Assembly: GCA_964247055.1 (NCBI GenBank)
Contig: OZ176057.1
Location: 930,001 to 994,000 of the forward strand
DNA: 64,000 nt
Direction: 5' to 3'
From: Paragordius varius
Taxonomy: Eukaryota > Animalia > Nematomorpha
The notes beneath the pieces were generated by a model. The model saw only the letters and a list, made by a program, of their open reading frames with translations, did no database searches and was not told where the DNA came from. The position numbers and the translations under genes were made by a program. The first letter of the stretch is position 1, and each line of letters opens with the position of its first letter. Of this stretch, positions 6,901 through 60,946 are shown piece by piece.

Positions 6901-7940
6901 CATAGAAAAAAATAAAAATAAGATATAGGTTAATAGAGGTTTGTTTAAGATTGTTTGAGGATTCCAGAAATCATAAAATAAACACTATTTATAACATTAA
7001 ATTTACTTTGGCTAAAACTAAATATTTTTATTATTATGTTTGGGTTAATATGCAGGTAAAAAAATTTTTTTCAATGTTTAAATATATAGGGTTTAAGGAC
7101 AAATCTATAAAATTTGAATTTTACTATCATTAATCCAGTAACCTTGTTTTTTTATTATATTGTATTTATATTTGATTAAAATCAGACATCATAAAATTTA
7201 AGCTAAAAAGCATTTTGCAGACTTGATGAATTTCAATTTTAAAAAAAAATGCAAAAATAATAAAGTTTTTAGGCATCGTTTAACGAAAAAATGTAAAAAT
7301 TTTTGATTGAGTTTAAAATATTTGTTAATTCAATACATCATATTAATTATATTGTCAGCCTAATCTTTTTTTTTCCGATTCCATTATTATCATATATTTA
7401 TAAAAATGGAAAATGCTATGCTGGCTTTGTGATCCGTTTCCGGAAAACCACCCAATCTAAATGTCGAAAAAATATAAACATTAATGAATGCCCCGACAAT
7501 AGCTTCGCCCTTTTTTTGCATTAAGCTTTCAGTTGAGGCCCACCCGTGTAAAAAATGGGTTTCTTTGAAAACAGAAGTCCACAAAAATCGTGTCTTTGAG
7601 ACAATTTTCCGGAGAACGTGTTGGACCATTCAATTTCAAATATGATTTTTGTTTACTTTTTTTTCGATTGCACCGAACATAGTCGCCTCGCTTTTTTAAT
7701 TTAGGCCCTCTTTTTAGGCGCTCTCAATATCCCATTTTTTTTAAAATAAAGCAAAATCCACATAAATAATTTTTTGAAACTATTTTCCCCCAAGTAAACA
7801 ATAAATTAGTATGAATGCACCGTTTTTAAAAATCCTATGAGAACATAGCTATTTAATAATGTTTCGACATAATCCACATATGTGGATCATTTTATTGTCC
7901 CTTTTTTCAAATAGTCACCCCCAGAAGTCCGAATGACATT

Positions 7941-18000: not shown

Positions 18001-21000
18001 GAAATTCATTAGAACAAATCTTGAATGATGATAGAAAGTTTGAACCTACTAAACAGAATCTTAATTATAAAGAAAACATTTTTGAATCAAAACAATTCGA
18101 GTCGAAAAATCCTGAAAATTCTAAAGAAAAAATGCTTGAATCAAAACTATTTGAGACTGCTAAACAAAATCTTAAAAAACCTAATGAAAAAATGCTTGAA
18201 TCAAAATTTGAGACGAATAATCTTGAACATTCTAACGAAGTAAACTCTAAATCAAAATTTGAGCCTGCTAAAAATAATCTTAATTCTAACGAAAAAATGT
18301 CTGATTTCAAAAACTTAGAACCTAAAAATTTTGTTGAACATTCTAAACAAGTAATCTCCGAATCAAACCAATTTGAACATACTAAACAGAATCTTGAAAA
18401 TTGTAAAGAAAAAATATCTGATATGAAAAACTCAGAACCTAAAAATTTTGTTGAACATTCTAAAGAACTAAACTCCGAATCAAAACCATGTGAGGCTAAA
18501 AATTTTAGCAATTTTGACGTTAAAAAAGGTCCTGAAAACACTGAGAAAGAAAATAGTGAGAAATCTGCCAACAATATATTGTATCCATATCTGCTTGTAA
18601 ATATTGGATCTGGCGTTAGTATTCTAAAGGTAAGACAAGTATGCAATAAGTTTATATGTTTTAAATCAGGTGTAACCAATATGCAGCCTTCTATATTATT
18701 TTAGAAAATTTTTAAGGATGAAATTTTACGAATGCCAAGTAAAAAAAATTTTTTAAACACAATATTTGAAGGAAGCCAAGTAAAATTAAGTTTGGTGAGA
18801 ATTAGTAGGAAAAAAATGTTTAGATAATTAGGATTTTTAAATCTTTCCTATGTTTGAAATTTACCATTTACAATTCAAATTCACCCTCGAACAATTCAAA
18901 TTTACCCTAGAAATAACTCACCCTAAAAATAAATTATGTGTTTTCGTGCAAATATAACTCATATTAATATGATATCTTTTTGGCCTAGTTTACCGATTTT
19001 TCAGTATAATTTTAATTTTAAACAAAATTTCATTTCTTAAAAAGATATGGGTACTTTTTAATCTTAAAAAACACATATTTTAGGGTGAATTTGAATTGCT
19101 CATGGGTGAATCTGAATTCAAGGGTCAATTTGAAGTGTAAATTGTATATTTGCAAGTTATAATCGTTCAAAGATGAAACAGTATTATAAAAAAATCATTT
19201 TTTATGTAAAAAATATTTTTTTCTTCAAATATATCTAATGCGGATATTCATTACTTTACTTTACTATTGTAAGATGATAATAATTAATTATATTAATATA
19301 TGTTTTTATGTTTTAAAAAAAATTTAAAATTTTATTATAAAATTTTATTTATGTCAAAATGTTGTAAAAATTTTTATAAAACAAAATTTTATAGGTTGAA
19401 AGTGAAACTGAATACAGTCGAATAGGGGGTACTTCAATGGGTGGTGGAACTTTTTGGGGTTTAGGATCTCTCCTTACAAGCGCTAAAGTAATAATAATTT
19501 TTTTTTCTTTTAATAGCAAAATTATCACCTTTATATCACCTTTATACGCTATTTTCTCCTTTCAAAGGAGGTAAGCGTGTTAGAGTTTTCCATTTGTTTC
19601 TATCTTGAGCTTGTTCGATATCGATACTAAGGGAATCTAGGTCTTCTTGAATGGTGGATTGCCAGGTTTTATACGGTCTTCCTTTTTTGTTTTTATTATT
19701 GGTTGAATAAGACTGTATGAGCTTGATCCAGTTTGTGTCTTGCGCTCTGTAGATGTGACCAGCCCAACGCAAGCGGTATTCCCGGATAGCTGTATTAATT
19801 GGTTTAATTTTTAGAGTTTGATAGGGGCAGCAAAATTTGGCTTGGAAATTGTATATGTTAGGGTTATGTGCGAAAAGAATGGCGTTTAGGATCTTTTGCT
19901 CACCCTTTTGCAGTAATAGTAGATTTGATTTAGTCATAGGCCATGTTTCCGTACCATATAGTATAGCAGGACGTATAGCCGTCATAAAAATTTTTGCCTT
20001 TGAGCTGAGTAAAACGTACTTATTGTTTACTATTGTGCGCAGACTATGATATTTTTTCCAGGCGGCTTTGATTCTATGCGATAAGGCCGATTCTATACCA
20101 CCACCAGCATCCAAAGTATCGCCTAGATATGTAAATTTGTCGACAATTTCGAATGAAGTGGAGGGTTCGGGGGATTCTATGGTTAATGTATTTGTTGTAG
20201 TGCACGAGGGGCAGATAAAGTTTTTATTATCATATAAACTTTTTAAAGTGGAGCATTTTTTATGTACCCACTTTAAACATTTGTTACACTTTATTGAGTT
20301 TGACTTTACATTTAATGAGCACACGGAGCAGGGCCATTTTATTGTCCTGTTTTCATCGCACATTAGTTTAGTCTTTGATGTATTTACCTTCAAACCGAAT
20401 TTACTAAGGGTATCCTTCCATAAATTTAACTTTTCCATTAATTCCGGTGCAGATGTGGCGCATAATATTAAGTCATCAGCGTACAGAAGTTCAAAAGGTA
20501 AGCCTTTTCGTATGTCTTTTGTGATCTCCTCCATAATTAGAATAAATAAAAGGGGGCTTAATATAGAACCTTGGTGTAGGCCGTTTTTAAGTGGGATGGG
20601 GTTCGTATCGCCAACGCTTGTACGGATTACAGTTGAGGTGTTCTTATATAGTGCTTCTATTATTTGTATCATATTTTCCTCTATACCTTGCCTTCTGAGG
20701 GACCAAGCAATCAGGTGTTGCGGGACTGAGTCGAAAGCCTGTTCCAAGTCTACAAACGCATAGTGGAGAGGAAGATTTCTCAGGTGAGCATTTTGTAATT
20801 GGCGGATTATAAATATTGCGTCTATAGTACCCTTGTTTTTTGAAAATCCAAATTGCATAGAATCTATGGTGCAGTGTCGACGGATTCTGTTGGCTATCAG
20901 ATTTTCAAATATTTTAAAACCATGTTCTAAGATGCGTATGGGACGGAAGTTGGAAACGTTAAAACGATCTCCTTTGCCCTTATAAATTGGAATTGTGTAG

Positions 21001-24000
21001 CTTTTCAGCCAATCACAGGGTATGATATTATTTAATGCTATGTTGTTCGCAAGATTTTTGAAATAGTCCAAAAATAAATTATGATCTAGGGCTTTGAATA
21101 CATCATTTGTGATTTCTGATAAACCTGGGCATTTATTACTTTTTAAATTCTTTAAACAAAATTCTATTTCATCATTAGTAAATGGTTGAAATAAAGAATA
21201 TGTTGGTTCGTGATTTCCACAGGTATTTTAGGTTTATTAAAAATATTAAAAAAGTGGTTATACCATGTGGCTTTTATAACTTGGGCGTCGTGGGTTATAC
21301 TATTATCGGGTAATCAAATTGCATTTGTTTCGGCCCTTATATTATTATCATATTTTACCCATCTATATACAGATTGAGAAGATATGGCATTTTCTAGTTC
21401 CTTCCCTTTTTCTTCACCCATTTTTCTCATCGATGCTCTGATCGCTTTACGGCAATCTTTCTTTGTTTGGAGGTAATTTATTTTGCTGTCAGCACTTTTT
21501 TCTTTTTTCCATTTTTGGAATGCAGATTTCTTTTTCTTAATTATATCTATCAGGGATATTTGCCACCACCATTTAAATGCTTTTTTATTATTAGATTTCA
21601 TTCTCCCAACATTCTTCTCTAGTGATTCAATGCAGCTATATTTTAAGGAATTCCAGAGGTGTTCCGGAGAGGTTGTTTTTAATTTAAGGGAACTTTCCGT
21701 GTCGAGTTTCAATCTATTATTGATATTATTATCGACTAATTTTTTATATCTAAATTTAGGTTTATTTTGTCCAATGGGTGATTGCGTTGATGTAGATTTA
21801 TATAATTCAGCAATAATGAGTTTGTGCTGTAGTTCTAGAGCGGGGATAGATCTAATATTTTTAAAATGGGATTTGTTTTCTTTTCTTGACATAATTATGT
21901 CAATCATCGAGCGATTTGTGCCGGATATATAGGTTATCAAGTTATTATCATTTTTTTTAAAAAAGGTGTTAATGATGGATAAATTATTATTACTTGCGAA
22001 ATCTAATAATATTTTACCATTTTCATTTAAATCATCCATTCCAAAACCTCCATGTACTGAATGTAAAGATTCTTTACCAAAGTGAGAGTTTAGGTCACCC
22101 CCAATAAATATGAAATCAGTGTGTGGAATAGCAGTGACTTTTTCATATAAAGCCAACCAGAATAAATCCTTACAGTTTGAATCACAATTGATTTGTGGGG
22201 CGTATGCTGATAAAATATGAAAGATTTTTTTGTTGATTTGAATTTTTAATACTAATAATCTTTCAGAACAGTAATCGATGGATATGATATTGGATAAAAT
22301 GGAATTTTTGACATAAACTCCGACACCTGATGAACGGCCATTAGATCCAGACCAGAATAATTTATAATCTAGAATGTTTTTGGAACCAGTGTTCTTCCAG
22401 CGAGTTTCTTGGACGCAACATATTTCGATGTTCTTGGAGAAGAGCAAAGCTGCTATTTCCTGACTCCTTCTGGTTAAAGATGTTATATTCCAAGTGGCCA
22501 GACGAATGATATGATTAGTATGGAGTGTGGGATTCGAACACATATTATGTTTCGTTATAATGTAATGATATGATAAGAACAAGCAAAAAGCGAGAAAGAA
22601 AAGTGAATTAGCGATAAAATACTGAAGTAAATTATGGAGCAACCGTTTTTTACGCCGTGTATGCCCTTACTAACCGGCAACCAGAGAATCTGGAGAAAAG
22701 TAAATAAACGATTAAAGAAAGATGGTGGTTACAGCTGTAAAAGCGAATGAATGATGTTTATTTCTAATAGCAAAATTATGATAAAATATACTTTTTTTTG
22801 CAGGTGAGAGTGAGTTTTTAAGAATAATTTGATTTAAATATCAACAGCTGTATTAATAATTTTATTTATGAATAAATTTTGTGAAAAACTTGTGGTTTTT
22901 AACTAAAAAGATAAAACAAAATATAAAATTTAAAGTATTAAATTGTTTTTACGGTTTCACTCATAGATTACTGAATATTTTTATTCATTTAATTTATCAT
23001 TAAATTATCAAAAAATTGCCTTTTTTCTTGTTTTTTCAAATCAAATCCTAAGGATTTGATTTTTGGGAAAGTTAAAAGGAAAAAGAAAAAGGAATATTAA
23101 GATGGCTGGATATTGTAAAGAAGAAATCACTGATTATTTAATTTTCAAGGGAACTCGACCTTATAAAATACCTACCTACTCCTTGCCTCTTTTATAATTT
23201 CCAAAAATGGGCTCTTTAGAGTTTTACCAATTATTATGATTATTCATCAGAAATCCATCATTTTCTCTGTATGAGGTTTATTTTGACAAATTGTTACAAT
23301 TAGCAGACCAAGGCAATCATATTACATTAATATAGCAATAAATCTGTTAAGTTTTTTTCAAAAACACCAAATTGCTGTATATAAACTATAAAATTTGGGT
23401 TTTTTTCGAGTAAAACCAATTATTTTGAGTTTTTCTAAAAAACCAATTATTATTCTTTTTACTCCCCAAATATTAGGGTTTCGATGAATTGCAATTAGCT
23501 GTCTAAGACCATCATACATTAATATAACAATAAATCTATTTTACTTTTTTTTAAAAAACCAAATTATTTTATATAAACTATAAAATTTAAGTTTTGCAGG
23601 GTTCTACCAATTATTTTTGAGTTTTTTTCTAAAAAACCAGATGTTATTCTCTTTACTACCCATAAAATTAGGGTATTGATGAATTGTTTTAATTAGCTGT
23701 CCTAGGCGATTAAACCTTAATATAGCAATAAAACTGTTTAAGTTTTTTAAAAAAAACCAAATATTGCTTTATATAAATTATAAAATTTGGGTTTTCCAGG
23801 GTTCTACCAATAATTTTCTTTACCCTACAATAATTAGGTTTTTGACGAATTGTTACAATTAGCTGTCCAAGGCGATCATATACATTAATATAGCAATAAA
23901 TCTCGTTAAGAATATTAAAATAAAGTATAAAATTTGAATTTATTTTTAGAGTTTTTTTAAAAAACCAATTGTTTTACTCAAAACATAGGGTTTCGATGAA

Positions 24001-27000
24001 TTATTGCAATTAGCTGTCCGAGGTGATCATAGAAATGTTGATATGTTAGTTTACTTTTTTTTATAATAAAAAACAAATTGCTTTTATAAAATTTGGGTTT
24101 TTCCGAGTATAACCAATAATTCTTTGAGTTTTTTTCTAAACCAATCAATTATTATCTTTGCTACCCAAAAACATAGGGTTTCGATGAATTTTTTTAATTA
24201 ATTTAAGATGTTTAAACCTTAAAAATAACAATAAACCTATTTGAGTTTATGTTTAAAAAAATTATTTTACTGAAATTTTACCCTCTAAAAATTAGGGTTT
24301 CGATGAATTATTGCAATTAGCTGTCCGAGGTGATCATAGAAATGTTGATATGTTAGTTCGCGATATATATGGGGGACATTACAGTGCGCATAATTTACCC
24401 GCCACCTTGATAGCTTCGAGTTTTGGAAAAACTGTACGACGATCTTCAAATTATTGGTAAATTTTTTGAACTTTTTTTAAAATTTTTGTTAATAAAATTT
24501 TTTTTGTGGTAAAATTATCATATTTTAAAAGTTTTAACGTTAAAAAAAGTTATCGAGAGTTTTGGAAAAACTGTACGACGATCTTCAAATTATTGGTTGG
24601 TAAAATTTTAAAACATTTTTTTCTAAAAATTTTAAAACATTTTTTTGATAAAATTATCACATTTTGTAATAAAATTTATCATATTTTAAAAGTTTTAATG
24701 TTAAAGTTATCGAGAGTTTTGGAAAAAATGTACGTCGATCTTCAAATTATTGGTGAAATTTTACATCACTTTTTTTTAAAAAAATTTAAAACATTTTTTT
24801 TATAAAATTATTATATTTTGTGAGAAAATTATCATATTTTAAAAGTTTTAATGTTGAAAAAAAGTTATCAAAATAAAATATTATTAGTTAATCTTTTTTA
24901 AATGATGATTTTCTTTCTGTTATATATTTTGGAGAGTAGTGTTCTTGTGTTTTTTTATTAATAAAAATAACAAGAACACCAAAAAGTGATAAATAAAGTT
25001 TTTGTCGTCAAAAAAGTGTGTATATTGTTGTGTGATCAAATTATTAAAGCAAGTTTTTAAATGGAAATTAGAGGGTAAAGGAAATTGATAATTAGATTTT
25101 TGTAGATAACTTTTTTTAATTAAAAACTCTATGGTTTTTTTTAATTTTTACAATTATTTGATTACAAATTTAAATTATATTGTAAAATTTTCATGTTTAG
25201 ATGGTGTGATTATTAAGACGCGTAAAATTAGTTTATTTATCTATGCTAACACTTTGATTCAAATTTGGGTATCTAAATAACCCAGACTATATTAAAGTTG
25301 TTTTTTTTTTTTGAAAAAAAAAATACTGAAAAAGAAACGATCCCAATCTAATTTATTTCAATTTTTATTGTTGTATTTAGGTTACCAGATACCGAATTTA
25401 GCAATGTCAAATCATTTGATAATAATTCCAATCAAAATTATATACCTCACCAAGAAGAAAATATTTCCAATAAAGAAAATGAGAATAATGAGAATAACTC
25501 CAATAAGCATGATTGTTTTACAGCAAAAACATGTATTTTATCAGACCCTGAAAGTAATTTAGAATTGGCAGAAGTCTTACCTACGACCCCAATAAAGTTT
25601 TATAGGGGTGAACAACAATCAGAAAACCATATTACAGATAAAAAACTTGGCGATACAAATGAAAAAACTAAAAATTTTGTTTTGAATAATTCGAAAAATG
25701 GCGACGACGACCACACTCAAAGCAAAAACTTGTCAACTGAAAGTTTAAAGAATAATGTTAAAAGCCGTGAATTTGTTATTAGTCAAAAACTTTTTTTTGA
25801 CCATAATAATTACAATTCATTAATAAATGCAAACAAATCTAAAAATCTCAAAGATAGCAATAATAATTTAAAAAACGATAATAATTTTCAAACATCCACA
25901 AAAAATGTCATTTTAAACATTGAGAATAATGATGAAACAAATTTTGTACCCGAAAATATTTTACGGACAAATGAAAATATGTCACCCACAGGATTTCGTA
26001 AAAATTCGTGCTCAGGTTTTTCCATTTTATATTTTTTCTATTTTTTATAAATTATATTTGAAGGGTATATACGGTAATATAAACAATATTTTTATCTAAA
26101 TGACGATCATATTTTTTTAAATTTTAATTTTTGCTATATAAAATATTTTATTAGAATCGTAAACTAGATAATTGATAGTGCTATTAATTTACATTTCTCT
26201 TTTATATTTTGCAGATTACTTAAACAATCAGTTTTATTTAAAAAATTCAGATTCAAAAAATATGGATTTAATTTTTTTAATTATTACAGTAAAAACAATT
26301 ATACGGATAAAACGTACAAATATAAAGACAAATATTTCTATCTAAATACCATACCTTTTTTAAAACCTTAATTTTTGCTATATAAAATATTTAATTACAA
26401 TTGTTATAACTACATAATTGATTGTGCTATTAATTTACATTTCTCTTTTATATTATGCGCAGTTTAATAAAGTTTTATTTAAAAAATCAAGATTTAGAAA
26501 ATATGGTTGGTTGTATTTTAGAAAAAAATATATGCCTTTATATTTTTACGCGTTTTGTGCGTATAATTTCAATTTTTACTGTATTTTACATTAATAAAAA
26601 CTTGTATGTGTGGTCGTAAGAAATTTTTGTTCGCTTATTAAAACTTTTTTTAAAAAAAACTTTTTTTAGGTTTTTTTATAGAAACAAGTTTTTGGTGTAT
26701 TTTTTTTATAAAAAAGATTTTTTACGGAATTTCACCTTATTTTTTCCTCAAAACTTTTTTTTGTAATTATTTTTTGTCCGTTTTTAAAACCCCAATTTTT
26801 TAAATAGTCAATATGATTTGCTACAAAAAATGTTATTTTGCTTCATTTTTTAACCGGAATTTCACTTTACTTTACTTTTTTTTGGAGGGATTATAAACTT
26901 TATTACATTTTTATTCATAAAAAAATTTCTTAAAAATACTTTTATGTATCTACAATATTTTAGTAAAAAACCCATTTTAAAACTTTATTTCAAAAACTCA

Positions 27001-37851: not shown

Positions 37852-40800
37852 CACCAATATATATATATATATATATATATATACCATTTACAATTCAAAT
37901 TCACCCTTAAACAATTCAAATTCACCCTCGAACAATTTTAATTTACCCTTGAACCAAATTCACTATCAAGAAAAATTATATGTTTTTTTTATTTTATATA
38001 ATTTTAAAACATAAAATTTTGTTTCCAATTAAAATAATACTGAAAAAATAATAAACTATGCCATAAAGATATATTTCATATTATATTAATAATCAGTTAT
38101 ATAAGTTCGTAAACACATAAAGGGTAAATTCGAATTGTTCGAGGGTAAATTTAAATTGTTCTAGGGTGAATTTGAATTGTTCGAGGGTGAATTTGAATTG
38201 TTCAAGGGTGAATTTGAACTGTAAATGGTATATATATTGTATATGTTTTGCATAGGAAAAACATTATGAAAACGAATTGGCCCTCGAATATTTAGCCAGA
38301 GATGAATCTAATTATTCCGAGAAGCAAAGCCTCCCCCCTTTGAATAATTCTTCACCACCATCATCATCTATATTCATAAGAGCCCAAAAATCAGAATTGT
38401 GGAATAAAGCTTGTTGGTTAAAATTAATCAAAGGTATACTGGCTGGTAATATATTTGATTGGGGTAGTCGGGATATTTTACCCCTTTTAATGGCTAAAAA
38501 AAATGGAATTGAAAATACCTTTAAAAATCCTGAGGAGAACAGTAAAAATGTTGACAAAATAAACCAAAATTCAGTTGTTTTAGATATTGAAAAATCTGAA
38601 AAAGATGAAATTGATATAAACAGCAGAATTGAACATCAATTAACGTTTGATGAGGCTTTGGAAAAAATACCGGGTATATTTTAATTTTATTTGTAGAATT
38701 AAATTTGAATTTGACAATATTTTTGGGGTTATTGTAGATTTTTTTTTAGAGTTTTACAGTAAATGACTTATATTTTTTTTAAAAGGCACATCCATACACA
38801 ATGTTTTTATTAAGTCTCTTCTTAGGAAATTACATTTGAGACCAAAAAAACAATTCATCTATTGAAATCAATTTCATGATTTATTTATTCCCTTATAATA
38901 TGGTATATGGAATCAAGAAAATTAATCAAACCAATATAAATACAAATATTTTAACCAATTTTTTCTGTATAATTTATAAGATATTAGATTTAAAATCGTT
39001 TTATTATTCAACAACTATATATATATATATATGTTAATATAATTTAAAATATTGATGACTTTTATAACCAATGATTTTACACCTTATGAAATATATAGTA
39101 TCCCTTATTTTATCAAAAAATTTATTATTTTTCATAAAATGGGTTAAATATCTGGTAAAGAATGGAAAAAACAAGACTTTTTTGATGAATATGATATATA
39201 GTTAATACCATAGAGCTCTTGTTTTTTCGTTAACAAATATTTATACCACCCATTAAACGAAAGAAAATAAATAAGTTTTTGATAAAATTAAGGATACCTG
39301 ACTGTTTTATATAATATAATATGTGTTAGATCGTCTCTGGTTAGATGATTGTGATGAATGGTTAGATAAATTATTACAATCAAAACCCAACAATAATAAT
39401 AATAATAAGTCAAATCCAAGAATTGAAAAAGTCGAACCCTATTATAAATGTGTTGCTATATTTGTAGACAATAGTGGAGCGGATATATTATTGGGTATTT
39501 TCCCATTTGTCCATGCCTTACTGCAATTGGGTTTAAAGGTTTTTTTTAAAAAAGTTTTTTTTTAGCTTTTTCTTTAACTTTTTTTGAAAATATATAGTAA
39601 GTAACTAAAGATTTTAATAGATGTGTTTTTATATCTTTTAATTTATTAATTGGCTAAAGAGTTATATTACATTTATGGGTATATATGAGATTTTTATTTT
39701 ACCTAGTTAGTTATATAATCAATTGAAATTGTAGAGTTTTATTGAAAGAAAATAAAATGCTAGGAATGATTTTAGGTTACTTATAAAAATATCAAAATCT
39801 GTTTTAGCCAATCAAAAACACGAAATGACCAATAATAATTCTCGTAATTGCCATTTAGTAAGGTTTTTTACCTGCAAAATTTGATTAAATTAAAGCAAAA
39901 ATACAGGCATTTCTTAATAACTCCAGATAAAATTTTATTGTGAAGAGCGAGAAATAAAAATGTTGACTATATTGTATACCATTTAGAATTTAAAACCCTT
40001 AAAATATTGATATTCACCCTTGAACAATTCAAATTTACCCTAAAAATAATTTGTTAAACAAATTTCATTTTTATTTAAGTAATTTTTTTAAAAAAACACT
40101 TGATTAATTTTAGGGTGAATTTAAATTGTTTGAGGGTGAATTCGAATTGTTTAAATGTGAATTTGAATTGTTCAAAGTGGAATTTAAACTGTAATTGATA
40201 TACAATAGCGTATGGTAATAAACGACGAACGGTTTAAGATCAACACTTTATCCCCTATGTGATACCACAAATACTTTAAATATGGGATAAACTTCTTTAT
40301 TACGTTACTGTATATACATTTTACACTTTTTTTAGCAATATACTTTTTTAATCACACATTAAAGTAAAAAGCAACAATATTATTTGTTATATGAATCTTT
40401 GAATTGCTTGAGGAAAATAAGTTGAACAATTATTAATTGTTTTTATTATATTCATTACTTTAATTGCCAAAAATGTGCTTATAAAACACAAAAAAACATA
40501 AAACTTGCACAAATAATGAATATTGATTACATTAACAAATTCAAAGGCTCATATAACCATTAATATTGTTGTTTTTTTACATAAATATTTATTAAACTCT
40601 CACTCATATTTTGAAATACTTTAACGTTTTCAAAAACTATTCTGAACCTTGTGTATAAATTTAAAAGAGAAATGATTGCTATAGAAATGATTTGGGAAAA
40701 AATCTAAAAAAACTTTACCGAAATTAAAACACTATCCTGAAAAAGGTTATACATATATAACCGAAAATTAGATTTGATTTAATTAATTTGCTATTTATTT

Positions 40801-44347: not shown

Positions 44348-46412
44348 TTTATTATATACCATTTACAATTCAATTTCACCCTTGAACCAAATTCAAATTC
44401 ACCCTTGAACCAAATTCAAATTCACCCTAAAAATAAATTTATATCTTTATGGCATATTTTATCATTTTTTCAGTATTGTTTTAATTTAAAAAATTTTTAT
44501 TTTTTGACAAATATATAAAATATAGGTAATTTTTTATCTCAAAAAACATATATTTTATTTGAGAGTGAATTCGAATTGTTCAAGGATGGATTTGAATTGT
44601 TCGAGGGTGAATTTGAATTGTAAATGGTATATAAGTCAAAGTAAATGGCAAAAACGCGTATAAATGGTTTATGGTTAATTTATTTAGCTAATATATAATG
44701 TTTTTGGTTATAATTGAATAACCTTTGTCATGATAAAAAATAAATTTAAAAAGAAATAAAAAAAAATGATAATATAGCGTTTAAAAAATCATTTATACAC
44801 GTTTTTGCCATTTACTTTCTTTAACTTGATTTATACATGCGTGGTAATTCCTTACTTTTTTATAATTCTGAGCAGTTTTGTTAAGCAATTATAAAGGAAG
44901 TGATTAATTTTTCTACACTATTCTTTGCATAAAGATGTGTGCAATCATGGAAATTAATAATATTGGTTATTTAGCCCTCTTTTTTAAAATCTATAATTCC
45001 ATAATGTTTTTTACATTCGTCCGTTGATCGAAAAAAAATGTGATCCATACAGTTTTTTATACATTTTATTACAGTAAAATCTGAAATTATACGGGCAAAA
45101 TGTAAAAATATAAAAACATATATTTTTTTCTAAAAGATAACCATACTTTTTAAACCTTATTACATATAAAATATCTACCTACCACTGTAAAATAAAAAAT
45201 TGATGGATTTACATCTGTATTAGATATATTTCCTATTAAAATAATGAGTTATATTGAAAATAATCAAAATTTAAAAAGTATGGTTGTCTTTTTTAAAAAA
45301 TATATTTGTCTGTATATTTTTAAGTTTCATCTGTATAATTATTATTTTCACTGTACAGTAAGCGAATTATAAAGATCTTCACAATTTTATACATTATATT
45401 TAAAATTTAATGTGCGCATTTTTATACGAAACTAATCTTTTATGATTCAAAATTATTTAACAATATATATATAAATATAAATTGATTAAATTTTTTATGA
45501 TTATTATTACATACAATAATCATGGCTGTAAATATTTAATTCATGTCTTCCACGCAATCATAATTTGAAATAAAGAGTTTCTGACATATCATAATACCAC
45601 CCATTCTTATATTACGGTCAAAATTAATATTATACGGACAAAATGTAACAATATAAAGACAAATATTTTTATTCAAAAGACAAATATACCTTTTTTAACC
45701 ATAATATATGCTATATAAAAAATTAATTACGATCGCAAACTACACCTTTTCTTTTTTATATTTTGCAGTAAAAAAACAATAAGTTATATTATAAAAAACA
45801 TCAAGATTCAAAAAATATGGTTGTCTTTTATAAAAAAAAATTTGTCTTTATGTTTTGACGTTTTGTCCGTATAATTTCAGTTTTTACTGTATTTCTTGCT
45901 ATGTATTGAATGTAATTTTGGCAATAACTAAAAAATGATATATATGGATATACGGTAATCTACAATATTTTAACACAACCTAAATTATTTTTATAGAAAA
46001 TTGTTTTATATATTTACGCATTAATTTAAAACTTTTGTGATTATAAGACTCTTTTAGAGAAAAAATAGCCGATTGACATAAAGACCTGAAAATATAAAAT
46101 TGAGATCAGGGGGTTTATATTAATATGATTGGCTAATTTTGAGATTTAATTATGTTTCCTCAGAATATACTCAAATACACTTATGGTTGTTCTAATATAC
46201 CTTTTTTAATCTATGTAAATTATTTTTTCCTATTACAGTAATAAATTATACGGACAGAACGTAAAAATATAAAAACTATTTTTTTGAAAAGATTAACATA
46301 CTTACCCCTTAATTTTTCCCTTATAAATTATTTTATTCCATAAAATTGTAAAATATATAATTGATTGTGTTACCTTCATACTTTGCAGTTTTAAACAGGC
46401 TAGTTTTATTTA

Positions 46413-47535
46413 ACTAGACAACAAATTTTAACTTTTTTTAACTGCCATTCTTGTAAATTTAAAATTTATTTCATTAAAGTACATAATTAGTATATCTGAA
46501 AAGAAAATTGGTCTAGCATGAAAGAATTTTTTTATATTGGAGTTTATCGATAATTTTTGGCCCCGATTTAACATTAAACTTGAAATTTCGAAAATTTAAA
46601 GTTTTAAATATGAAGCCATGTATTTTATATCATTCGAAAGAGCGCAAAAAACTGAATCTTTTAAATGGTAGTAAGTCATTTAAATCAATCGGATGTAAAA
46701 GTTATTTGGATTTAAATGGTCGAAATTTTCAATCCTTATATAAGTCTAGAATTTTCACAGACCAACTAATTTGAAAATCATAAAAATTATTTTAATATAA
46801 TTATTAGGGTTATATTAGTATTTAATTTAAAAAAAATGTTTGAAAAAGCTTTTGGTTTGCTTTTTAAATTAAAATTATTATTATCATAAATATTTTACCT
46901 CGTGGATACTAAAATGCATAGTTATAACTGTAAATTTATTACATAATGGCTATAAAAGATCAAAATTACCTTAAACTTTGTTTTTATTTTTAAAATTTCG
47001 AAATTATCAGCCTTGTAAAGAAAATAAATTAATATTGATGAGATGGTAATTTTTAAAAAACAAAAAACTTAAAAATGGCTGTTTTGAGTAACATAAAAGC
47101 AATAAAAAATGTTTTAATCAAAAAAAACTTTCTTGTGTTATCTTTTTTGGATATTCATCCTTCTCTAAATAAAGTTTGAGCTATTTTCATCCATTAGATT
47201 TAAAAATATAATAATTTAAAAAAATGCTCTCGCTTCGCGCGTTTGTCGCTCTTTGTGTCCAATATTAACTGTCGATGTAATACATATTAGTATGAATTTT
47301 ATAGAGTTTTTAATACTCTTTCGAATGATATATTACAAATGGGCATTACTTGTATATTTTCAAAGAAAAACATTTTTTAGTAAAATTTTGATAAAGAGGG
47401 CGCATAATCAAAAAAATCAAATTATACAAAATTCTTTCATCGAGTTATAATTTTTATTTCAGATTTACTGTTAGAATGATGCTAAATATCAGAAAATGCA
47501 AAAAACTCGAGTGGCAGAAAAATTTGTTGTCTAGT
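46413..47535. mobile_element. 1.1-kb non-autonomous TIR element (ACTAGACAACAAATTT ends) flanked by a 192-bp direct duplication
   Basis: TA|ACTAGACAACAAATTT ... AAATTTGTTGTCTAGT|TA; flanks 46221-46412 and 47536-47730 are identical except for a 3-bp indel. Confidence 0.8.
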
Positions 47536-47985
47536 TATTTTTTCCTATTACAGTAATAAATTATACGGACAGAACGTAAAAATATAAAAACTATTTTTTT
47601 GAAAAGATTAACATACTTACCCCTTAATTTTTCCCTTATAAATTATTTTATTCCATAAAATTGTAAAATATATAATTGATTGTGTTACCTTCATACTTTG
47701 CAGTTTTAAACAATAGGCTAGTTTTATTTAAATAAATTATGAAATGAAAAATATGATTGTCTTTTAGGGAAAAATACTTGTATTTATATTTTTACTTTTG
47801 TCCAGATAATTTCAATTTTTATTGAAACAAATAGATAATCATACATAGCCAAATATGGTTGTTTAACACACTTTATAAGCGATGATTGGTATCATTTAAA
47901 ATCATTCCAATATTTAAAACATTTACAATAATAAATTTTCATATTAGTCGAAACTAAAATTGTGGATAATACTGGATTTTTTTAG

Positions 47986-48888: not shown

Positions 48889-50705
48889 GCCCCAAATTAT
48901 ATACCATTTGCACTTCAAGAGTGTCCATGAACATTTCAAGTTGGTCGTTGACTTTTTTGCTATGATTTTAATTTTTATCAATTAAATGGCATATCATTCA
49001 TTTATTTCATCATATTATACTATTTTGAATTATTTAATTAATTTCAAGAATTAGATTTTAATAAATTTTTTATTAGATGCATAACATATATATATTAATA
49101 TATCCAATAAAATGGGTAGATTTTTCAATGCCTTTGTCCCAGTATACTCAATATGCAAAAAGTGCGCAGATATTCAAAAATCTAAAAAATATAGTTAAAT
49201 CTATTGCTTACCTTCTAAAAAACTTTGGATTTTACATGTGTGTTCCGGATATATTTTTTGAAGCGGTTTAATGCAAGAGATTGATACAATTTCTAAAACC
49301 TCTAAATTATTTGTTATAGATACTAAATTTTCTGTTTTTTAAATTGAAGGAATCAAAAACAGGGTAAATTTTTTTATTTCACAAAGTATCTAAATTTCAA
49401 TTTGCATGACTCAAATAAATCTAAAATAGTTGTGTAATACCTATTTCTTATAAAAAATCTTTATATTTTGCATGCATGTTTAATATCTACTTTCAAAAGG
49501 GGTGTAAACATTTTTTATGTTAAAAGATTGAACTCATACTTTATATTATTTGTTAAATATACTTTAATTTCTATGCTCCAATTTACAGAACACAAAATTT
49601 GCAATCCTTTTAAAATGACACTTTGGATTTTTAATAGTCTAATAGGAGCAGTATTATGATAATGTATGCTGTGTATTTAAATATGTAAGCATAAGAACGT
49701 AAGTAATACTTCCTTGAACATGTTAATCTTGTAGAATTTAACTTTATACCAAATTGACACATAAGGCATATATTGCGATTTCAATAAAATATTTATTTTA
49801 TTGTTTAAAAATATTCACTTGTAATTGATCAAAAATACATATATCTATATACTGTAAATAAAGTGGTGTAATGTATAATAATAATTAATAAAAATTTAAT
49901 TTTGCGTTCGATTATCTAATATCTATATGTCTAATAAGAGAGAATAAACTAAAAATAAAATACTAATAGTTTTACATAAATGATAATCATAAATAAAAAA
50001 TAGAAATGTTTAAGATACCCAATTATAACAAACATATTTCAATATAATTTACACAAAAATGAAGCATTTAAACATATTGTTTTTTATATGGATAAATACA
50101 TCAGTCCTTCACTTTTTTATGTTTTGTCTCTATAATGTCAGTTTTTACTAAAAACTAAAAATTGAGGACAATTGAAGCGAATGAGTTTTAAAAGAATGTA
50201 AGGCGATATGATATGTAATGAAATGATATGCAGAAAAAATTGAATTTATACGGACAAAACGTTGTAAAAATATAAAGAAAAAATTATTTTTCAAAAGACA
50301 ACCATACTTTTTAAACCTTAAAGTATACTATAAATACCATTTAATTACATTCGTATAATACATAAATGATTGTCTTACCTGTAAATTTTTACATTTTGAT
50401 TTATATATTCCAAATATACTAACCGGTAAAGCTGTTTTTCGATTCTCTATTTTTTACTTTGCAGTTAAAACAAATCAGTTATGATTAAAAATTGAGGATT
50501 TAAAAAGTATAATTGTTTTTTAGGAAAAAGTTGTCTTCATATTTTTACGTTCCGTATAATTTCAATTTTTGTCAATCTTTTATAACCATTCTGCATTCAA
50601 AATGTTATAAAACAAAGGATTAAAAAGAAGTGTACATTTAAAAAGCGAGAAAGTTTAAAGTTTATGAAATTATTAATTTCGTGTGCGTTCTTGCATATGG
50701 CGACT

Positions 50706-51750
50706 TTATTTACGACCATAACCCCAAGGACCTCTGTTATATCCACCCCATCCTGGATAACCCCAACCTCTATATCCATACCCATAAGGGCGGCCCCACC
50801 TATTACCTCCGCTATACCAACTATTGTAATAATTGTAGGGCTGATACCAACCCCATCTTTTATTCCGTTTATTTTGGCCTTTTTCATCTCTGCTCTTAAA
50901 GTCAGCAAAGTTCATATTTTCTTCCACACTTCTCCGTTCGTGTTTGGCATCCATTACAACATCTATTTTTTATGGGGGGCGAAATATATAAATTAGATGG
51001 CGTAAATATTGGATTAGATACGAATATTAAGTATTTAACTAAATGAACGAGGTATATAAATTAGATTAAAATTCTAAAACTATAAAATATTTTGACATAT
51101 CATTGACTATACAATCTAAAATTGCGTGTTGAATATAATAATAATCTATATTAAACATAATAATACTTTATTATATAACTAGTCTGCAATATTTGAGATG
51201 GCCTGAAAATGTAAAAAGGGTAAGATTAAATGTTTAAGGGTGTATGAAATGTAGATTTGAATTTGAAATGTTTTAAGTTAATTAAAAGAGCTGAATTTAA
51301 GTGGAAATGCTGTGTATTACTTTAATTATATATTTATATATATACCATTTTTTGCAACCTCATTGGACCCGATATTTTTGTCAGGTAAAGATAATCCATT
51401 TACAATGTTTATTGACGCAAGGCATAGAACGAATAAACAAGCCTAAAAAATATAATACAGTAAATCTTAAAGTTATATAGAGATAAAAACACAAATACAG
51501 TAAATATAATTGATTTTTTACCAAAATACTCAATTACCTACTTTGCGATTTCAAACAATGAGTGTTATTTAAATAAATCAGTATTTTAAAAGTATAGTTG
51601 TTTTGGAAAGAATATTTGCCTTTATATTTTTAAGTTTTGTCCGTATAATTTAAATTTTTACTGTATTTCTTTCTAAAAACCCATTCATAATTTTTAAACT
51701 TAGATTTTTTTAAATAGAACTACATTCATGGTCACCCAATATATATTCAT
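50706..51750 (-). CDS. Secreted prepro-peptide, 122 aa, releasing a Gly/Tyr/Trp-rich cationic peptide with a C-terminal amidation signal
   Basis: Exon 3 50706-50962 and exon 2 51346-51442 join in phase 1 (G+AT = Asp). Candidate exon 1 51736-51750 (MNIYW, GTGACC donor). Spliced N-terminus MNIYWACLFVLCLASINIVNG is signal-peptide-like, RNKR precedes WGWYQPY..., and the C-terminus is Y-GRK-stop. Exon 1 is the least certain part. Confidence 0.75.
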
Positions 51751-52983
51751 TAAAAATTTTATACGGACAAAACGTCGTAAAAATATAAAGACATTTTTTT
51801 AAAGACAACATGCTTTTTCATACACAATTTATCCTATTAAAATCATTTAATAACAATCCTTAAATATGTAATTGGATTGTGTTACCAATATACATCTCTA
51901 TTCTATACTTTGTTGTTAAACTATGAGTTATAATTAAAATAATTAAGATTCAAAAAGTATGGGTATCTTTCAGAAAATATTTATCTTTATTTTTTACGTT
52001 TTGTCCGTATGATTTCAGTTTTTACTGTAAGTTACGTTTTTCCATATGAAATGGATTTATGCAGATAAAACAAAATTAAAATAATATTCTTTAAAAATAA
52101 CAACTATAAACTTGATTTTTCCAAAAAAAAACTATGTAATTAAACTTTTTTATATATAAATATCAACAACTTACATTTCAATTCTCCATTTAGTAACCCA
52201 AAATAAGTTATGACAAAATGATTGATTTATAGATATAGTAAAAATTGCAATTATACGGACAAAACGTAAAAATATAAAAAATATTTTTTTAAAACCATAT
52301 TTTTAAACCTTAATGTTTCCTACATAAGCTATTTTTATTGTAAAAAAATTGTCTTTATATTTTTACGTTTTGTCCGTATAATTTCAATTTTTACTGTAAA
52401 TGTCTTTTAAAATATTTGTCTTATAGTTTTAACTTTTTGTCAGTATTTACACCGAATAATGTAGAAAAAATTGAATTATACGGACAAAACGTAAAAATAT
52501 AAAGACAAATATTTTTTTCCAAAGGATATCCATACTTTTTTAAACCTTAAAATTTCTCATATTAACTATATAAATACAATTATAAATGTATAATTGATTG
52601 TGTTGGTAATTTATATATATACTTATATATAAATCTATTTCTATTTTTTACTTAACTATTCAAACAATGAATTATATTTAAAAAATCAAGATTTAAGATG
52701 TATGGTTATCTGTTGGGATTTTGTCTTTAGTTTTTGATTTTGTCCATATAATTTACACCGTATAATATTTAATTACATAAATTACTTTCCAAAATGTCAG
52801 AATAAAATTCATTATGTATTGCTAAGCTAGGCAGGAGTGTCCAAAATTTTGCTGTGAAAAATTAAAAAATTAAAAATAAAATGACTGTTTTATATTAATT
52901 GTTTAATTATTATAAATAATAAACTCGCTAACTCGAAGCTACTTTTTTTTCAAATTATTATTATTGTTTGATAAATAAAAGAC

Positions 52984-54230: not shown

Positions 54231-55577
54231 TAGTTATAAAGCTTAGATCATGGGATTCCCAAATTTTGTTATAAATATTTGCCGCTGTTTCGGTTATAGT
54301 AATAATCAATGTCGAATGTATAGCTGTTTTTATCTAAAAAATATTATTATCTTTTATTTTTACGTTATGTCCGTATAATTTCAATTTTCATTATCATCCA
54401 AATTACAAATGTTTAATATATTATAATTCTGAATGAATCCAATTCTAAGCGGCCTATATAAGAAAATTAAACCTATACAAACCAAAAGTAATAATTATTG
54501 TAAAAATCGAAATTATAAGGACAATAATTTTTCCTATCATTAATTTTTTTTATATAACTATTTAATTGTAATTTTGATGAGTTGTTACATTTTTTCTGTA
54601 AAGAATTTATAGTTTAAATAATATTTTTTCTTTGTTCTTTACTCAAATATGATTTCAATTCACAGATAACTATATGTACTATTTTCAGTTCGTTTTCGTT
54701 ATGATATGCATAAACTAATTGTATAGTTATATATGATTATAGTTTAATTAATTAGATGGCGCTTAAGAAATAGAAAATATTAATTAAATTCTTTATATGA
54801 GTTACGATGTAACTTATATATAGATGTTAATCTTAAAACATTTAATTAATGAAGTATTTTAGTTGTAATTGTTAAGGTTATATATTTAATCATAAAATAA
54901 AACTCTATGGCCTTTGAGAAATTATTACAGTAATTGATAAAAATTAATATCAAGAATATTTTTTTATATATGACAAATTTTTTAATAACGACATAACATA
55001 AGGATTATTATCATCTTACTTTTCAATTAAAACGTTGTAATTATTATCAAGCATTAGGTGGCTTTAAAAAGTTTTAAATGAGTTTGCAATTTGTTGTGCC
55101 ATTTATTTAATACCATTTACAGTTCGAATTCACCCTAAAAATAAATTATTTTTGAACTAATATAACTCATTATTAATATCAAATATATGTTTATGTTATA
55201 GTTTATTATTTTTCAGTATTATTTTAATTTAAAACAAAATTATTTTTAAAAAATATATAATAATATTGGTAATTTTTTATATTAAAAAACATATATATGA
55301 GAGTAAATTTGAATTGTTTGAGGGTGAATTAGAATTGTTCAAGGGTGAATTTGAATTGTTTAAGGGTGAAATTAAATTGTAAATGGTATATATAAAGATG
55401 ACGTTTTCTGCCAAAAATATTAGTGAGTAATTAATTATATAAGCCCTATCCTGCCTAATGGATAAAGGAGATATAATAATTGGCTTGATCTAAGTACAAT
55501 CAGTTGCACTCTCCAGGCCTCAGAACTTAATTGATCTTAAGTTAAAAATAGTCAGTATATATAAATACAACCTCCTG

Positions 55578-55660
55578 ACTGACAATATTTGCCCGTGTTC
55601 ATTAGGTGTGACTGATGGATCCACAACAAGGACGAAACGCTACTGACAATATGACCCGTG
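55578..55660 (+). ncRNA. Degenerate hammerhead-ribozyme-like motif
   Basis: CTGATGGATCC-ACAACAA-GGACGAAAC at 55612-55638 versus the canonical CTGATGAGTCC-loop-GGACGAAAC; flanked by a direct repeat ACTGACAATAT..CCCGTG. Confidence 0.4.
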
Positions 55661-57343
55661 GTAATGTAAATTTTCGTTTTCATATACTATTGCTTAATAG
55701 GAAGTACTATGTATGACATCTAATTGCAGAGGTAGGCTACTAATAATAATCTAAATCTTATGTCTTATGGATTAATTAGTATTTATTTTGATTAAAAGTT
55801 ACCTCCGTGTTATATTAATAAATACACGGCATTCTCATTGATTACATCCTTATATATTCGTACATATATATCTTTAAAACTTCGATGCTCAATATTTTAT
55901 CTCACAATTTTAAAAAAACTACTGAAGGAAACGGTCCAATTTAAATTTATGCTTCTCTGCTTTTTAAACATAAGCTAAAATATCTAGATAAAACTTAGTT
56001 TCGGAAAAAATGTTCCGTATCAAACTATTTGGACGCCATTACAATTTTACCGCATCATTGAAAAATATCGTGTTTATTTGATTACAAACCTAAAACTAAG
56101 TGTAATTTTAAAATCACATTTAACCTTGATATAAAAAGATAAGTGGTATGTTCTCATTATTTTTATATTAAGCCTATGCTCACATGTCATGTTGGCTAAA
56201 TTTTTGCCTTTGGGTTCTACCTCTGAATAAATATTATCAACTATTTTTGAATCATTTTTTATTATATTCGGTTCATTAATGTTATATAAAATGGTTCCAA
56301 TTTATATCATATTGGTTGAAATATTTAATTATCAAGCCTAGGGTTAACTACCCCATAAATCCGAGGACTCAAATGTATGTTGTATTTGTTGATATATATA
56401 ATTGTAAAATATTTTAATATGATTTTTCTTGCTTACTTTTTAAAAGTAATAAATAACATTGTTCCAACAATGTATCCAACAAAAAATTTTTAATAATATA
56501 TATTTATTTAAAGATTAAGTATTCAATAAATTTTGTTGATGAGTTCAATAAAGGTAAGGGTACTTCTTTCAAAATACGCAGTTTTATAAATCAAGGGTCT
56601 GGGGGAGATTTTCCTGGTGTACAACAAATAAAAATGTCAAGACTACGGAATGAAAAAAGACTTCAAATATAGTACATTTTGAAAAAGTCAAATAACTGGT
56701 ATTTTTAAAACATACTATAAACATCTTAACACTGTCTTGTGATTACGATAAAAATCCCATTTTAATTTGATAATATTGGGTATTAAATCCCTTTACGTTA
56801 CTGCTTAATTAAGGCCTCAAGACTTAAATATGCTATGTATTTGCCCCAAAATATTAGCTAACTCAATTTCCCAGGATTTGATTAGCTATTACTACACGTT
56901 CTGTCGGTTTTATACCCATAAAACAGGGATATTTTACAAAAGGTGAGGATAAACGTTCATGGACCTATCACATAAAAAATATTCTCGGTAAAACCCCATT
57001 ATATATCCCTTACATAAAGTTAATAAATGTATCATCCATAATATTAAAATTTTACTGATAAAAACAATAATAAATTATAGCGATCGATTTTCATACTTGA
57101 TTATATTAGTTAATTCTGTCTTAAACTTTTGAGTCTTATAAAATATTGTACTTATTGTTATAAATATATCCGCAATAGAAGTCCACTATAATGAGATGGT
57201 TTTTAATTATATAATGCCGAGGTTAGCCCTTAAAATTAATATCCTAAATAGTACATTAAAAAAATTTATAACGCTTAATTTGCTTTGACATTATGTGTTT
57301 AGGGAATTATTTTTGTAAAGCGTATTTTATGTAACTTCTTTAA

Positions 57344-58094: not shown

Positions 58095-60946
58095 ATGAGC
58101 GGCATTGCTATAAGTCGACTTACTGAAGAAAGGAAAGCTTGGAGAAAGGATCATCCTTTCGTAAGTTTATTAATTTTAACTTTTTGAATAAATTTTTCAT
58201 CTTTTAGGGATTTGTTGCAAGACCCTCAAAAAATGATGATGGAACTTTCAATCTTATGAATTGGGAATGCATAATTCCAGGCAAAAAGGGAACACCTTGG
58301 GAAGGTGGTAATTATAAACTTCGTATGATCTTTAAAGATGATTTTCCATCTACTCCACCTAAATGTAAATTTGAACCACCTCTGTTTCACCCAAACATAT
58401 ATCCCTCAGGTACGGTGTGCCTTTCATTACTTGACGAAGAAAAGGACTGGAGACCAGCTATTTCCATCAAACAAGTTTATTGGACTTAAATTTTTATTCA
58501 TATTACTGTGAAATATTGAAAACAATTTAAAAACATTTATATAAACCGTTTTTCTTACAACATATAATATTGATAGCGAATTATTGAATAAAATATATTA
58601 TTCAACACAATATATTTATCATTTAATTTTTACGTAGAAACAATTGAGTTTTTAAAGACATGTCTGTCTTTTAGGCGAAAATTTTTTTTTATTTATAAAT
58701 TCTAATACTTTATCTTAGTTAAATTTTTTTGCATTAGATACTTTTAGGCATTCAAGATCTCCTAAATGAACCGAACATAAAAGACCCGGCACAATCGGAC
58801 GCATATCTTATTTATTGGTGATTTTATTTCATTATAAATTTTTTAAAAAAACCAACTATTTTAAATTGTTAAATTAAGAACTTTTAATATTATTTGTAAA
58901 AAAAATTAAATTTAGGAATACAAATTTAAACGATACGCATGGAATTAACTAATATAACCTCAAATCGAATAAAAATGATATATAAAATCAAATACTCCTC
59001 AATTCATTATACAATGTAATTAGTTAAGTTGTTTGGTTTTTTGTGTGCGCATGCTTATCATCATTAACTTTTAAGTAAATTTGGAATTAAAAAAATAAGA
59101 TGGCCTTTAAATTAACTAAATATGATTTTTTCGAGAAAGAACATATGGGGAACCACCTTTTTTTAGGGTGTGACATCGAAACCGCGTTGTTTAAAAATAT
59201 ATATAATTTTAAATGGAACTTTAAACTAAAATTTTATAATCAAGATTATAAACTCTCTTGTTTATAAATCCTGCATTTTTATGCAATACATTGCCCATAT
59301 ATTTTTCACAGATATTATAAATTAAAATGGGATTACATATTTGATTGGTATTAGGCAGCTCTTAAATTCTAAACTTTTTAAATATATGGTGGTATAGGTT
59401 GAAATTTTAAACTGGCCTTTGTTGTTACTGCACTGAAAAGATCTTATAAATGAAAATTTTAATATTAGTTTAAATTCATCAGCAATTAAACTTATTTAAA
59501 ACATGAATTTTCGATTAAGAATTTGCCACATAACGGTAAAATTATAGCATTGAGACAAATATTTTATTTTAAAAACACCGCTGTATTTTTTTAAACTTGA
59601 TTTTTTAGCCATAACTCATTGTTTTAAATTGCAAAGTATGAAAGAGAGATATAAATTGTTACATAAACAATAGCATATATATATACCATTTGCACTTCAA
59701 AAGGTCCTTGAACACTTCAAGTTGGTCTTTGAACATTTCAAGTTGGTCCTTAAAATTTATAAATTTTGAGTTAACCATAATTTTTGCATTTATTTTTTAA
59801 TTTTATTATTTATTAACCGAATTTTTTTCATTTATTATATTTTTCAGTTAAATAAAAATTTTTACTTAAAAACCACTTTTTTGTTTCAAACAATTTTTTT
59901 TCAATTGAACAAAATTATTGACTCTTAAATGTTTTATAAGAAAAAATTTAAATCAATAACTTGGAAAACTTATATATTTTTTCATTTCGTGTTATCTTAT
60001 TAATATCCAAAATTATATTAAGAAATTAATAAAGATATACGGTTTATTAAAGATTACAAGTTGATATCGATTTAAAATTTATGTTAAATAATAGAAAATA
60101 GGTTAAAAACAATAAAAAAGATAAATTATTTACGATTTGATTGATAAAAGTTAAAAACAAAACAAAAAATCAAAGGACCAACTTGAATTGTTCAAGGACC
60201 AACTTGAAGTGTTCAAGAACCAACTTGAACTGTTCAAGGACCAACGTGAATTGTTCAAGGACACTCTTGAAGTGCAAATAGTATGAGTAAGTATGCATTG
60301 CTATAACGTTATTAATTATTGCCGAATTGCATATACAACAAAGGGCAGTATTATTAGCTTAATTTTTTTCACTTTTACTATTATTTGTTAATAATAATTC
60401 TCTTTGCTCCATATGCTTGGCAATGATAAATAACTTTCTAGCTTTACATACTTTCTCCTACTGTGTATTTTCAATTGTAAAGTATAATTGAAATTACACG
60501 GACAAAACGAAAAATATAAAGACAAATATTTTTTTAAAAAGACAACCAACCATACTTTTTTAAACCTTAATGTTTCCTATATAAGTTATTTAATAATTAT
60601 TGTATATTAATTAATTGTATTAGTAATATACATCTCTATAACACACACTTTACCATTTCAAACAATGAGTAATATTTTAAAAGAAATCAAGATTTTAAAA
60701 TTGTCTTTTGGAAAAAAGTATTTTTCTTTATTGGTTTACGTTTTGTTTGTATTTAATTTTTTACTGTATTTAATTAGTTTATATCGAAAAAGTCATAGTC
60801 TATACAGAAATTTTTATTTAAATGTTTTTACGTTTTGTCTTTATAATTTCAATTTGTAATTTTTATTTTACAGTTCTAACCGTATGGAATATGAAAAAAG
60901 GGTGAAGGCACAAGCTAAAGAAAGGAGCACAGTTACTCTCACATAA
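58095..60946 (+). CDS. UBE2I: SUMO-conjugating enzyme UBC9, 4 exons, 161 aa
   Basis: Exons 58095-58160 ([22 protein letters not shown]), 58208-58474 ([16 protein letters not shown]...[15 protein letters not shown], catalytic Cys), 58738-58817 ([19 protein letters not shown]), 60874-60946 ([14 protein letters not shown]). GT-AG introns with consistent phases. Confidence 0.96.

Follow-up and report, generated by a model that had tools for sequence, protein, structure and literature searches.

The locus raises the question of whether a short minus-strand segment of Paragordius varius DNA, lying between a PANK4-like gene on one side and UBC9 on the other (both on the plus strand), is a real gene and, if so, what kind of peptide it would deliver. 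The window (the whole stretch analysed, 64,000 nt in length) is eukaryotic DNA with a GC content of 15–34%, many MITEs and a 21-bp tandem repeat; Gordionus, with 27% GC, is comparable. Very probably, the segment belongs to a small gene for a secreted precursor that should release a cationic 46-mer rich in Gly, Tyr and Trp, and we hold with high confidence that this peptide gene is real. Its features and those of the upstream DNA are collected in Table 1.

Table 1. Features of the peptide gene and of the DNA upstream of it; positions are those of the window.
Feature	Position	Strand	Description
Possible 5' UTR	52813..52853	-	GC-richer 39-nt leader behind acceptor-like TTTTTCACAG; read from sequence
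Candidate first coding exon	52786..52812	-	ATG + 9 codons, phase 0, donor AAA/GTAATT
MITE, full-length, ~285 bp	51745..52030		Ends TACAGTAAAAA...TATACGGACAAAA; upstream of exon 2
Exon 1 as earlier proposed	51736..51750	-	5 codons, donor GTGACC; ATG inside MITE end
Exon 2	51346..51442	-	97 nt; acceptor TTTTTTAG, donor GTATAT; putative signal-peptide h-/c-region and start of pro-piece
Intron 2	50963..51345	-	383 nt, GT-AG, phase 1
Exon 3	50706..50962	-	257 nt including stop; acceptor AAATAG
Part of pro-piece in exon 3	50856..50962	-	35 codons, 10 K/R, 7 D/E
Predicted mature 46-mer	50718..50855	-	Between RNKR and G-R-K-stop
G-R-K-stop	50706..50717	-	Signal for carboxypeptidase trimming and peptidylglycine amidation

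Of the three-exon, 122-aa model put forward in the initial annotation, exons 2 and 3 were retained, whereas neither the first exon (51750-51736) nor the length of 122 aa was. The pair 51346-51442 / 50706-50962 is bordered by GT-AG and its phase 1 join keeps the frame, giving 354 nt, that is 117 codons plus the stop. The GC content of exon 2 is 0.34 against 0.22 in the intron, and the last exon is the sole 250-nt interval with a GC content of at least 0.41 among the 1,206 lying outside the LINE region. Several frames are partly open across exon 3. Synonymous codon usage was therefore scored against 851 codons taken from the PANK4 and UBC9 exons of the window itself: the minus-strand peptide frame gained +12.2 bits, or 0.16 per codon (host exons, 0.01–0.23), and the other five of the six frames were all negative, in a test noisy enough that certain host exons reach an equal score in their antisense frame. 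The minus frame is favoured because this score agrees with the in-frame signal exon, with the cleavage site placed at a composition boundary and with the amidation signal placed at the stop. An 82-aa ORF confined to exon 3, starting from the ATG at 50954, was rejected, as it would leave the in-frame hydrophobic exon unaccounted for.

The beginning of the gene is less firmly placed. A phase-0 upstream exon is required, since an in-frame stop precedes exon 2. The five codons at 51750-51736 are doubtful in this role because their ATG sits in a MITE end: it reads as CAT on the opposite strand, within the decayed end of the ~285-bp element at 51745-52030, and in an alignment of eight element ends it falls where the consensus has its TACAGTAAAAA end. 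Repeat matches reach 51738-51745, with a mean repeat coverage of about 10. The donor GTGACC is weak, yet host donors in UBC9 also vary (GTAAGT, GTTTAT, GTGATT). On these sequence features, exon 1 had probably been misplaced. Two other ways of beginning the frame were discarded, namely a micro-intron just 5' of exon 2 (the nearest GT leaves 16 nt, and no ATG occurs in 51443-51537) and an ATG split across intron 1, which runs into a closed frame.

The best candidate for exon 1 is 52812-52786, which has zero repeat coverage, an A at -3 and nine mostly hydrophobic codons including one Lys. Its donor holds the joint second-best score among the phase-0 candidates between 51443 and 58050, on an ad hoc scale where a rival donor at 52777, 9 nt further on, equals it. 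At 53979-53971 the donor alone scores slightly higher, but the signal start is poor. With the candidate exon the precursor would be of 126 aa, and the intron, of 1,343 nt, would be filled with MITEs; besides the full-length element, copies or parts lie at 51501-51665, about 52230-52420 and 52465-52755. A TATA-like TATAAAA is found about 80 nt upstream of the candidate ATG at 52812.

As for the precursor itself, the hydrophobic signal-like segment in exon 2 is present as originally described: it covers 16 codons, with 7-residue hydropathy values of 2.6–3.3 across the first five windows, and ends in V-N-G, consistent with the -3/-1 rule. The pro-piece totals 52 residues, 12 basic and 10 acidic including the junction codon, and is thus charged but near neutral; it contains an additional dibasic RR at 50936-50931 and ends in KR-N-KR, within which the furin-type site RNKR lies at 50867-50856. 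This site, the residue counts of the 46-mer and the G-R-K-stop were all exactly as claimed. The 46-mer is made of 13 G, 11 Y, 7 W, 4 R, 4 P, 4 N, 2 S and 1 Q, with no D, E or C (Gly 28%, Tyr 24%, Trp 15%, and 9% each of Arg, Pro and Asn), and has a mass of 5.63 kDa, a pI of 9.6 and 39% aromatic residues, mostly spaced 1–3 residues apart with weak internal repetition. The change in composition is sharp: G, Y and W account for 1 of the 35 residues before RNKR and for 31 of the 46 after it (p = 5e-10), while the D/E residues in exon 3 number seven before the site and none after. The furin-type site coincides with this boundary and the amidation signal abuts the stop.

A C-terminal Gly followed by two basic residues leads, by an established pathway, to carboxypeptidase trimming and amidation. 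Both hallmarks of the general class of convertase-processed amidated prepro-peptides, R-x-[KR]-R before the mature part and G-basic-basic after it, are found here; in residue shuffles the two occurred together in 0.07% of cases, for patterns that were picked post hoc. The sequence gives good support to the initial proposal of a secreted prepro-peptide that carries both a furin-type site and a signal for amidation. An AlphaFold model of exon 3 alone, made with no alignment and uninformative by itself, gave a pLDDT of 51 and a pTM of 0.12, without secondary structure, which is what one would expect of a peptide of this kind.

No match to exon 3 was retrieved from either 5.8 billion proteins or 1.84 billion representatives, and none to the mature part alone in a protein search. 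Pfam returned no family for exon 2, the pro-piece, the mature part or three overlapping ORFs, the mature part having none at E <= 10; a Baculo_PP31 match (E 0.079) was below threshold and was dismissed. In the ESM Atlas no named cluster was found for the mature part, and a Gly-rich oomycete cluster at 0.80 was set aside as being at chance level. Metagenome contigs gave no homologue, and the 64-kb window contains no paralogue, neither a second G/Y/W-rich frame nor a copy of an exon. The searches ran exon by exon, with exon 2 covered against Pfam and the window; they need shared exact words or are composition-filtered and limited in length, so that distant relatives could escape. Low-complexity peptides are moreover hard to detect, which makes absent homology weak evidence. 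As far as such searches reach, the precursor is an orphan with no detectable relatives.

A likeness to the nematode NLP-29 family and the caenacins had been drawn from YGGW/YGGY motifs. These are absent from the 46-mer, in which YGGY, YGGW and GGW do not occur, GGY occurs once and there is no YGG at all; the tie is compositional only and had been overstated. In shuffles of the same composition, at least two GG[YW] arise in 42% of cases. Peptides of the NLP-29 type begin directly after the signal peptide, whereas the hairworm precursor has a long pro-piece and a furin site. The 46-mer also has much more Trp and Asn and no significant similarity to them, and its gene is single within the 64-kb window, unlike the nlp/cnc clusters. 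What is shared is a putatively secreted, basic, Cys-free and linear peptide of similar size, rich in Gly and aromatics, in sister phyla. In nematodes, NLP/CNC peptides are basic epidermal AMPs rich in Gly and aromatics, and NLP-29 and the caenacins carry repeated GGY/GGW triplets or YGGYG/YGGWG and are encoded in gene clusters (PMC3409374, PMC6780910, PMC11112505). Since the defining YGG[YW]/GGY repeats are missing, we do not file the 46-mer under NLP-29/caenacins; judged by its motifs it is not a member, though it may act alike.

The layout of the precursor is also that of insect Gly-rich prepro-AMPs such as hymenoptaecin, with a cationic mature part and an intron inside the pro-piece; unlike in those precursors, the mature part is far shorter, 39% aromatic and followed by an amidation signal, and there is no sequence similarity. 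Attacin and gloverin are further insect Gly-rich prepro-AMPs. Hymenoptaecin consists of a signal peptide, a pro-piece, a convertase site and a Gly-rich mature part (PMC3415428).

The best reading of the locus, which we hold tentatively, is a furin-released, amidated cationic defence peptide. It ranks first mainly because one short product combining amidation with a pro-piece that can be removed is typical of bioactive peptides. For its working we infer splicing, exon 1, secretion, cleavage, amidation, the role of the pro-piece and the activity of the 46-mer, as follows. A single-copy gene of three or more exons would encode a precursor of about 126 aa, whose signal peptide would be cleaved after V-N-G; a furin/kexin-type convertase would then cleave behind RNKR, with the RR and KR further upstream as possible extra sites, and so take off the 52-residue charged pro-piece, whose task may be to hold the aromatic peptide in a soluble, inactive form. 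A carboxypeptidase would trim the final K and R, and PAM would convert the Gly to an amide. The unstructured 46-mer, cationic (4 Arg, no acid) and studded with Trp and Tyr, would defend the body surface or the reproductive or cyst secretions, with its Arg and Trp binding microbial envelopes. It may also bind nucleic acid inside cells, as has been reported of the Gly/Tyr-rich NLP-31, a bacteriostatic peptide that binds DNA (PMC5019075). Amidation raises the net positive charge of AMPs (PMC6780910).

One compact, non-repetitive, amidation-ready product would fit a diffusible effector more than a bulk structural protein, and the absent homologues would fit a fast-evolving effector; the sharp segregation of pro-piece and mature part also counts for defence. 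Against a defence role stand the lack of YGGY/YGGW with its single GGY, the missing paralogue in the 64-kb window (nlp/cnc genes being clustered), a pro-piece that is near neutral, unlike the acidic spacer of many AMP precursors, a modest charge density (9%) and the very close composition of Mfp-3. Neither does the furin-type site decide function, since cuticle collagens too are processed at such sites (PMC10538796). Of the antimicrobial or neuropeptide-like effector initially called, the orphan secreted design was upheld and the NLP-29 link was reduced to composition, antimicrobial activity being the leading guess from sequence.

The same processing might instead release an Mfp-3-like matrix or adhesive peptide, a distinct possibility. 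Such a peptide would self-associate via Arg-aromatic (cation-pi) contacts and be cured as its Tyr is oxidised to DOPA or dityrosine, whether in the cement of the egg strings, the cyst wall, the sperm drop or the cuticle, with the pro-piece blocking early aggregation. The 46-mer resembles fast and slow Mfp-3 in its Gly/Tyr/Trp/Asn/Pro/Arg composition and in being Cys-free, non-repetitive and unstructured, at 5.6 against 5–7 kDa; it differs in having no Lys and in a precursor with a pro-piece, a furin site and an amidation signal. Mfp-3 is not known to be amidated or to have a long pro-piece, and no Pfam match to Mfp-3 or any other family was found at E <= 10. [quoted passage not shown] Gly amounts to 28% against 25–29% in Mfp-3, Tyr plus Dopa to 24 against 20–27% and Pro to 9 against 6–8% (PMC5132118). 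From the side of the animal, hairworm egg strings turn from white to tan and the composition of the cyst wall is uncharacterised, both of which count toward a matrix peptide (PMC6892959). The resemblance to Mfp-3 is best read as convergence, the cosine showing shared chemistry only. A structural or adhesive role, ranked second in the initial annotation, comes out nearly equal to defence on account of the Mfp-3-like composition. The two roles need not exclude each other, as in egg-string protection.

A neuropeptide-like precursor appears unlikely. In such a precursor, cuts at single Arg would free short peptides, chiefly a C-terminal GPWGY-amide, as ligands of a GPCR of the worm itself, and the extra RR and KR sites of the pro-piece count for it. 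In C. elegans, the GPYGYG-amide of NLP-24 activates NPR-17 (PMC4427864). Recalling NLP-24, the 46-mer has an internal PYGYG and a C-terminal R-GPWGY-G, the GP[YW]GY being flanked by an Arg on one side and the amidation signal on the other; PYGYG occurs in 1.7% of shuffles, GP[YW]GY in 3.0% and both in 0.5%, for motifs chosen post hoc in a low-complexity sequence. Unlike NLP-24, it offers one amidated terminal piece, without a run of amidated copies, and neither YGGY nor the opioid-like YGG[YF] motif is present. Cutting at Arg would give five pieces, and only two of them, the last and one of 2 residues, end beside Gly; the Arg next to the latter's Gly precedes Pro, so that no series of amidated copies results. 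Very improbable is that no such gene exists, either because the locus is a non-expressed relic or because the product is the Thr/Pro/Ile-rich 110-aa ORF at 50664-50996 on the plus strand. That ORF is open for 110 codons with a hydrophobic start, exon 1 of the peptide gene is placed tentatively, and no canonical AATAAA occurs within the first 350 nt past the stop; on the contrary, at -6.4 bits in the noisy codon test the antisense frame falls well below the +12.2 of the minus frame, for which it was rejected as the product, and a frame opposite Gly/Tyr codons would be expected to be rich in Ile, Pro and Thr. We give the least credence, hardly any, to a parasite effector released into the arthropod host to suppress competing haemocoel microbes or to act on host receptors. 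Hairworms do live in the haemocoel of arthropods as juveniles, and as adults they drive the behaviour of the host (bioRxiv 2024.06.11.598342); a secreted amidated peptide is a suitable form for a host-directed effector, but this case is purely circumstantial, and the protein searches linked the sequence to no host peptide.

On a broader scale, it seems rather unlikely, though worth stating, that the 46-mer belongs to a set of Gly/Tyr/Trp peptides released by convertases and peculiar to horsehair worms, being either among the first defence peptides described for the phylum or an independently evolved Mfp-3-like glue. The former would be distant counterparts of the nematode NLP/caenacin peptides; the latter would hold egg strings or cysts under water and, unlike mussel glues, would have a pro-piece and be amidated. 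In the literature, no antimicrobial peptide or adhesive protein of Nematomorpha was found characterised, and the phylum is absent from a review of worm AMPs. Were the role one of defence, it would touch on the debated age of NLP/caenacin-like peptides (PMC3409374); were it that of a glue, mussel Mfp-3 would gain a counterpart from fresh water. A 46-mer can be made by synthesis, which keeps the cost of testing either leading idea low. Unannotated secreted orphans rich in Gly/Tyr are common in invertebrate genomes. The design is familiar and nothing is categorically new: this looks like a real orphan gene, whose first exon had probably been mis-drawn.

The remainder of the window offered some further observations. 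The plus-strand gene whose last exon ends near 44345 is, as we take it from recognisable motifs, a PANK4-like pantothenate kinase gene. A 26-nt GT-AG intron at 12050-12075 splits its D-I-G/G-S-L-V-K motif, and its exons 17838-18704, 25502-26047 and 38256-38681 contain long low-complexity insertions rich in Lys, Glu, Asn and Ser, one of which holds 57/117-bp internal repeats. Inside this gene lies a minus-strand LINE (19542-22642) whose two ORFs, one of endonuclease type (442 aa) and one of reverse-transcriptase type (509 aa), are in different frames; both were named from motifs, and the latter holds a Cys-rich PHD-like finger.

UBC9, at 58095-60919 on the plus strand, starts at ATG 58095-58097 and has a first intron of 47 nt. 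It identifies the DNA as animal, other invertebrates standing beside insects among its best matches. Exon searches gave best matches 87–91% identical, largely to insect-type UBC9 and to an unlabelled Logan transcript; for exon 2, UBC9 of beetles and other insects was best (82/90). This likeness probably reflects plain conservation. Among the matches listed there was no orthologous hairworm UBC9 locus for synteny, and no Gordionus record. Between the peptide gene and UBC9, an island of unique DNA at 55500-55720 (GC 0.44), without a clear reading frame, is possibly regulatory or an untranslated exon. An open, GC-richer frame of 79 codons, from a further gene, was also seen at 7380-7660 on the minus strand.

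The ~285-bp MITE family with TACAGTAAAAA...TATACGGACAAAA ends is very abundant throughout the window, where two related 21-bp satellite units also occur, with the longest array at 13978-15795. Finally, 46220-46397 and 47535-47712 are 100% identical direct repeats of 178 nt, 1,315 bp apart; both copies overlap MITE sequence, the stretch between them has weak inverted repeats, and the pair is either a duplication that came with a recent insertion or an artefact of the assembly.
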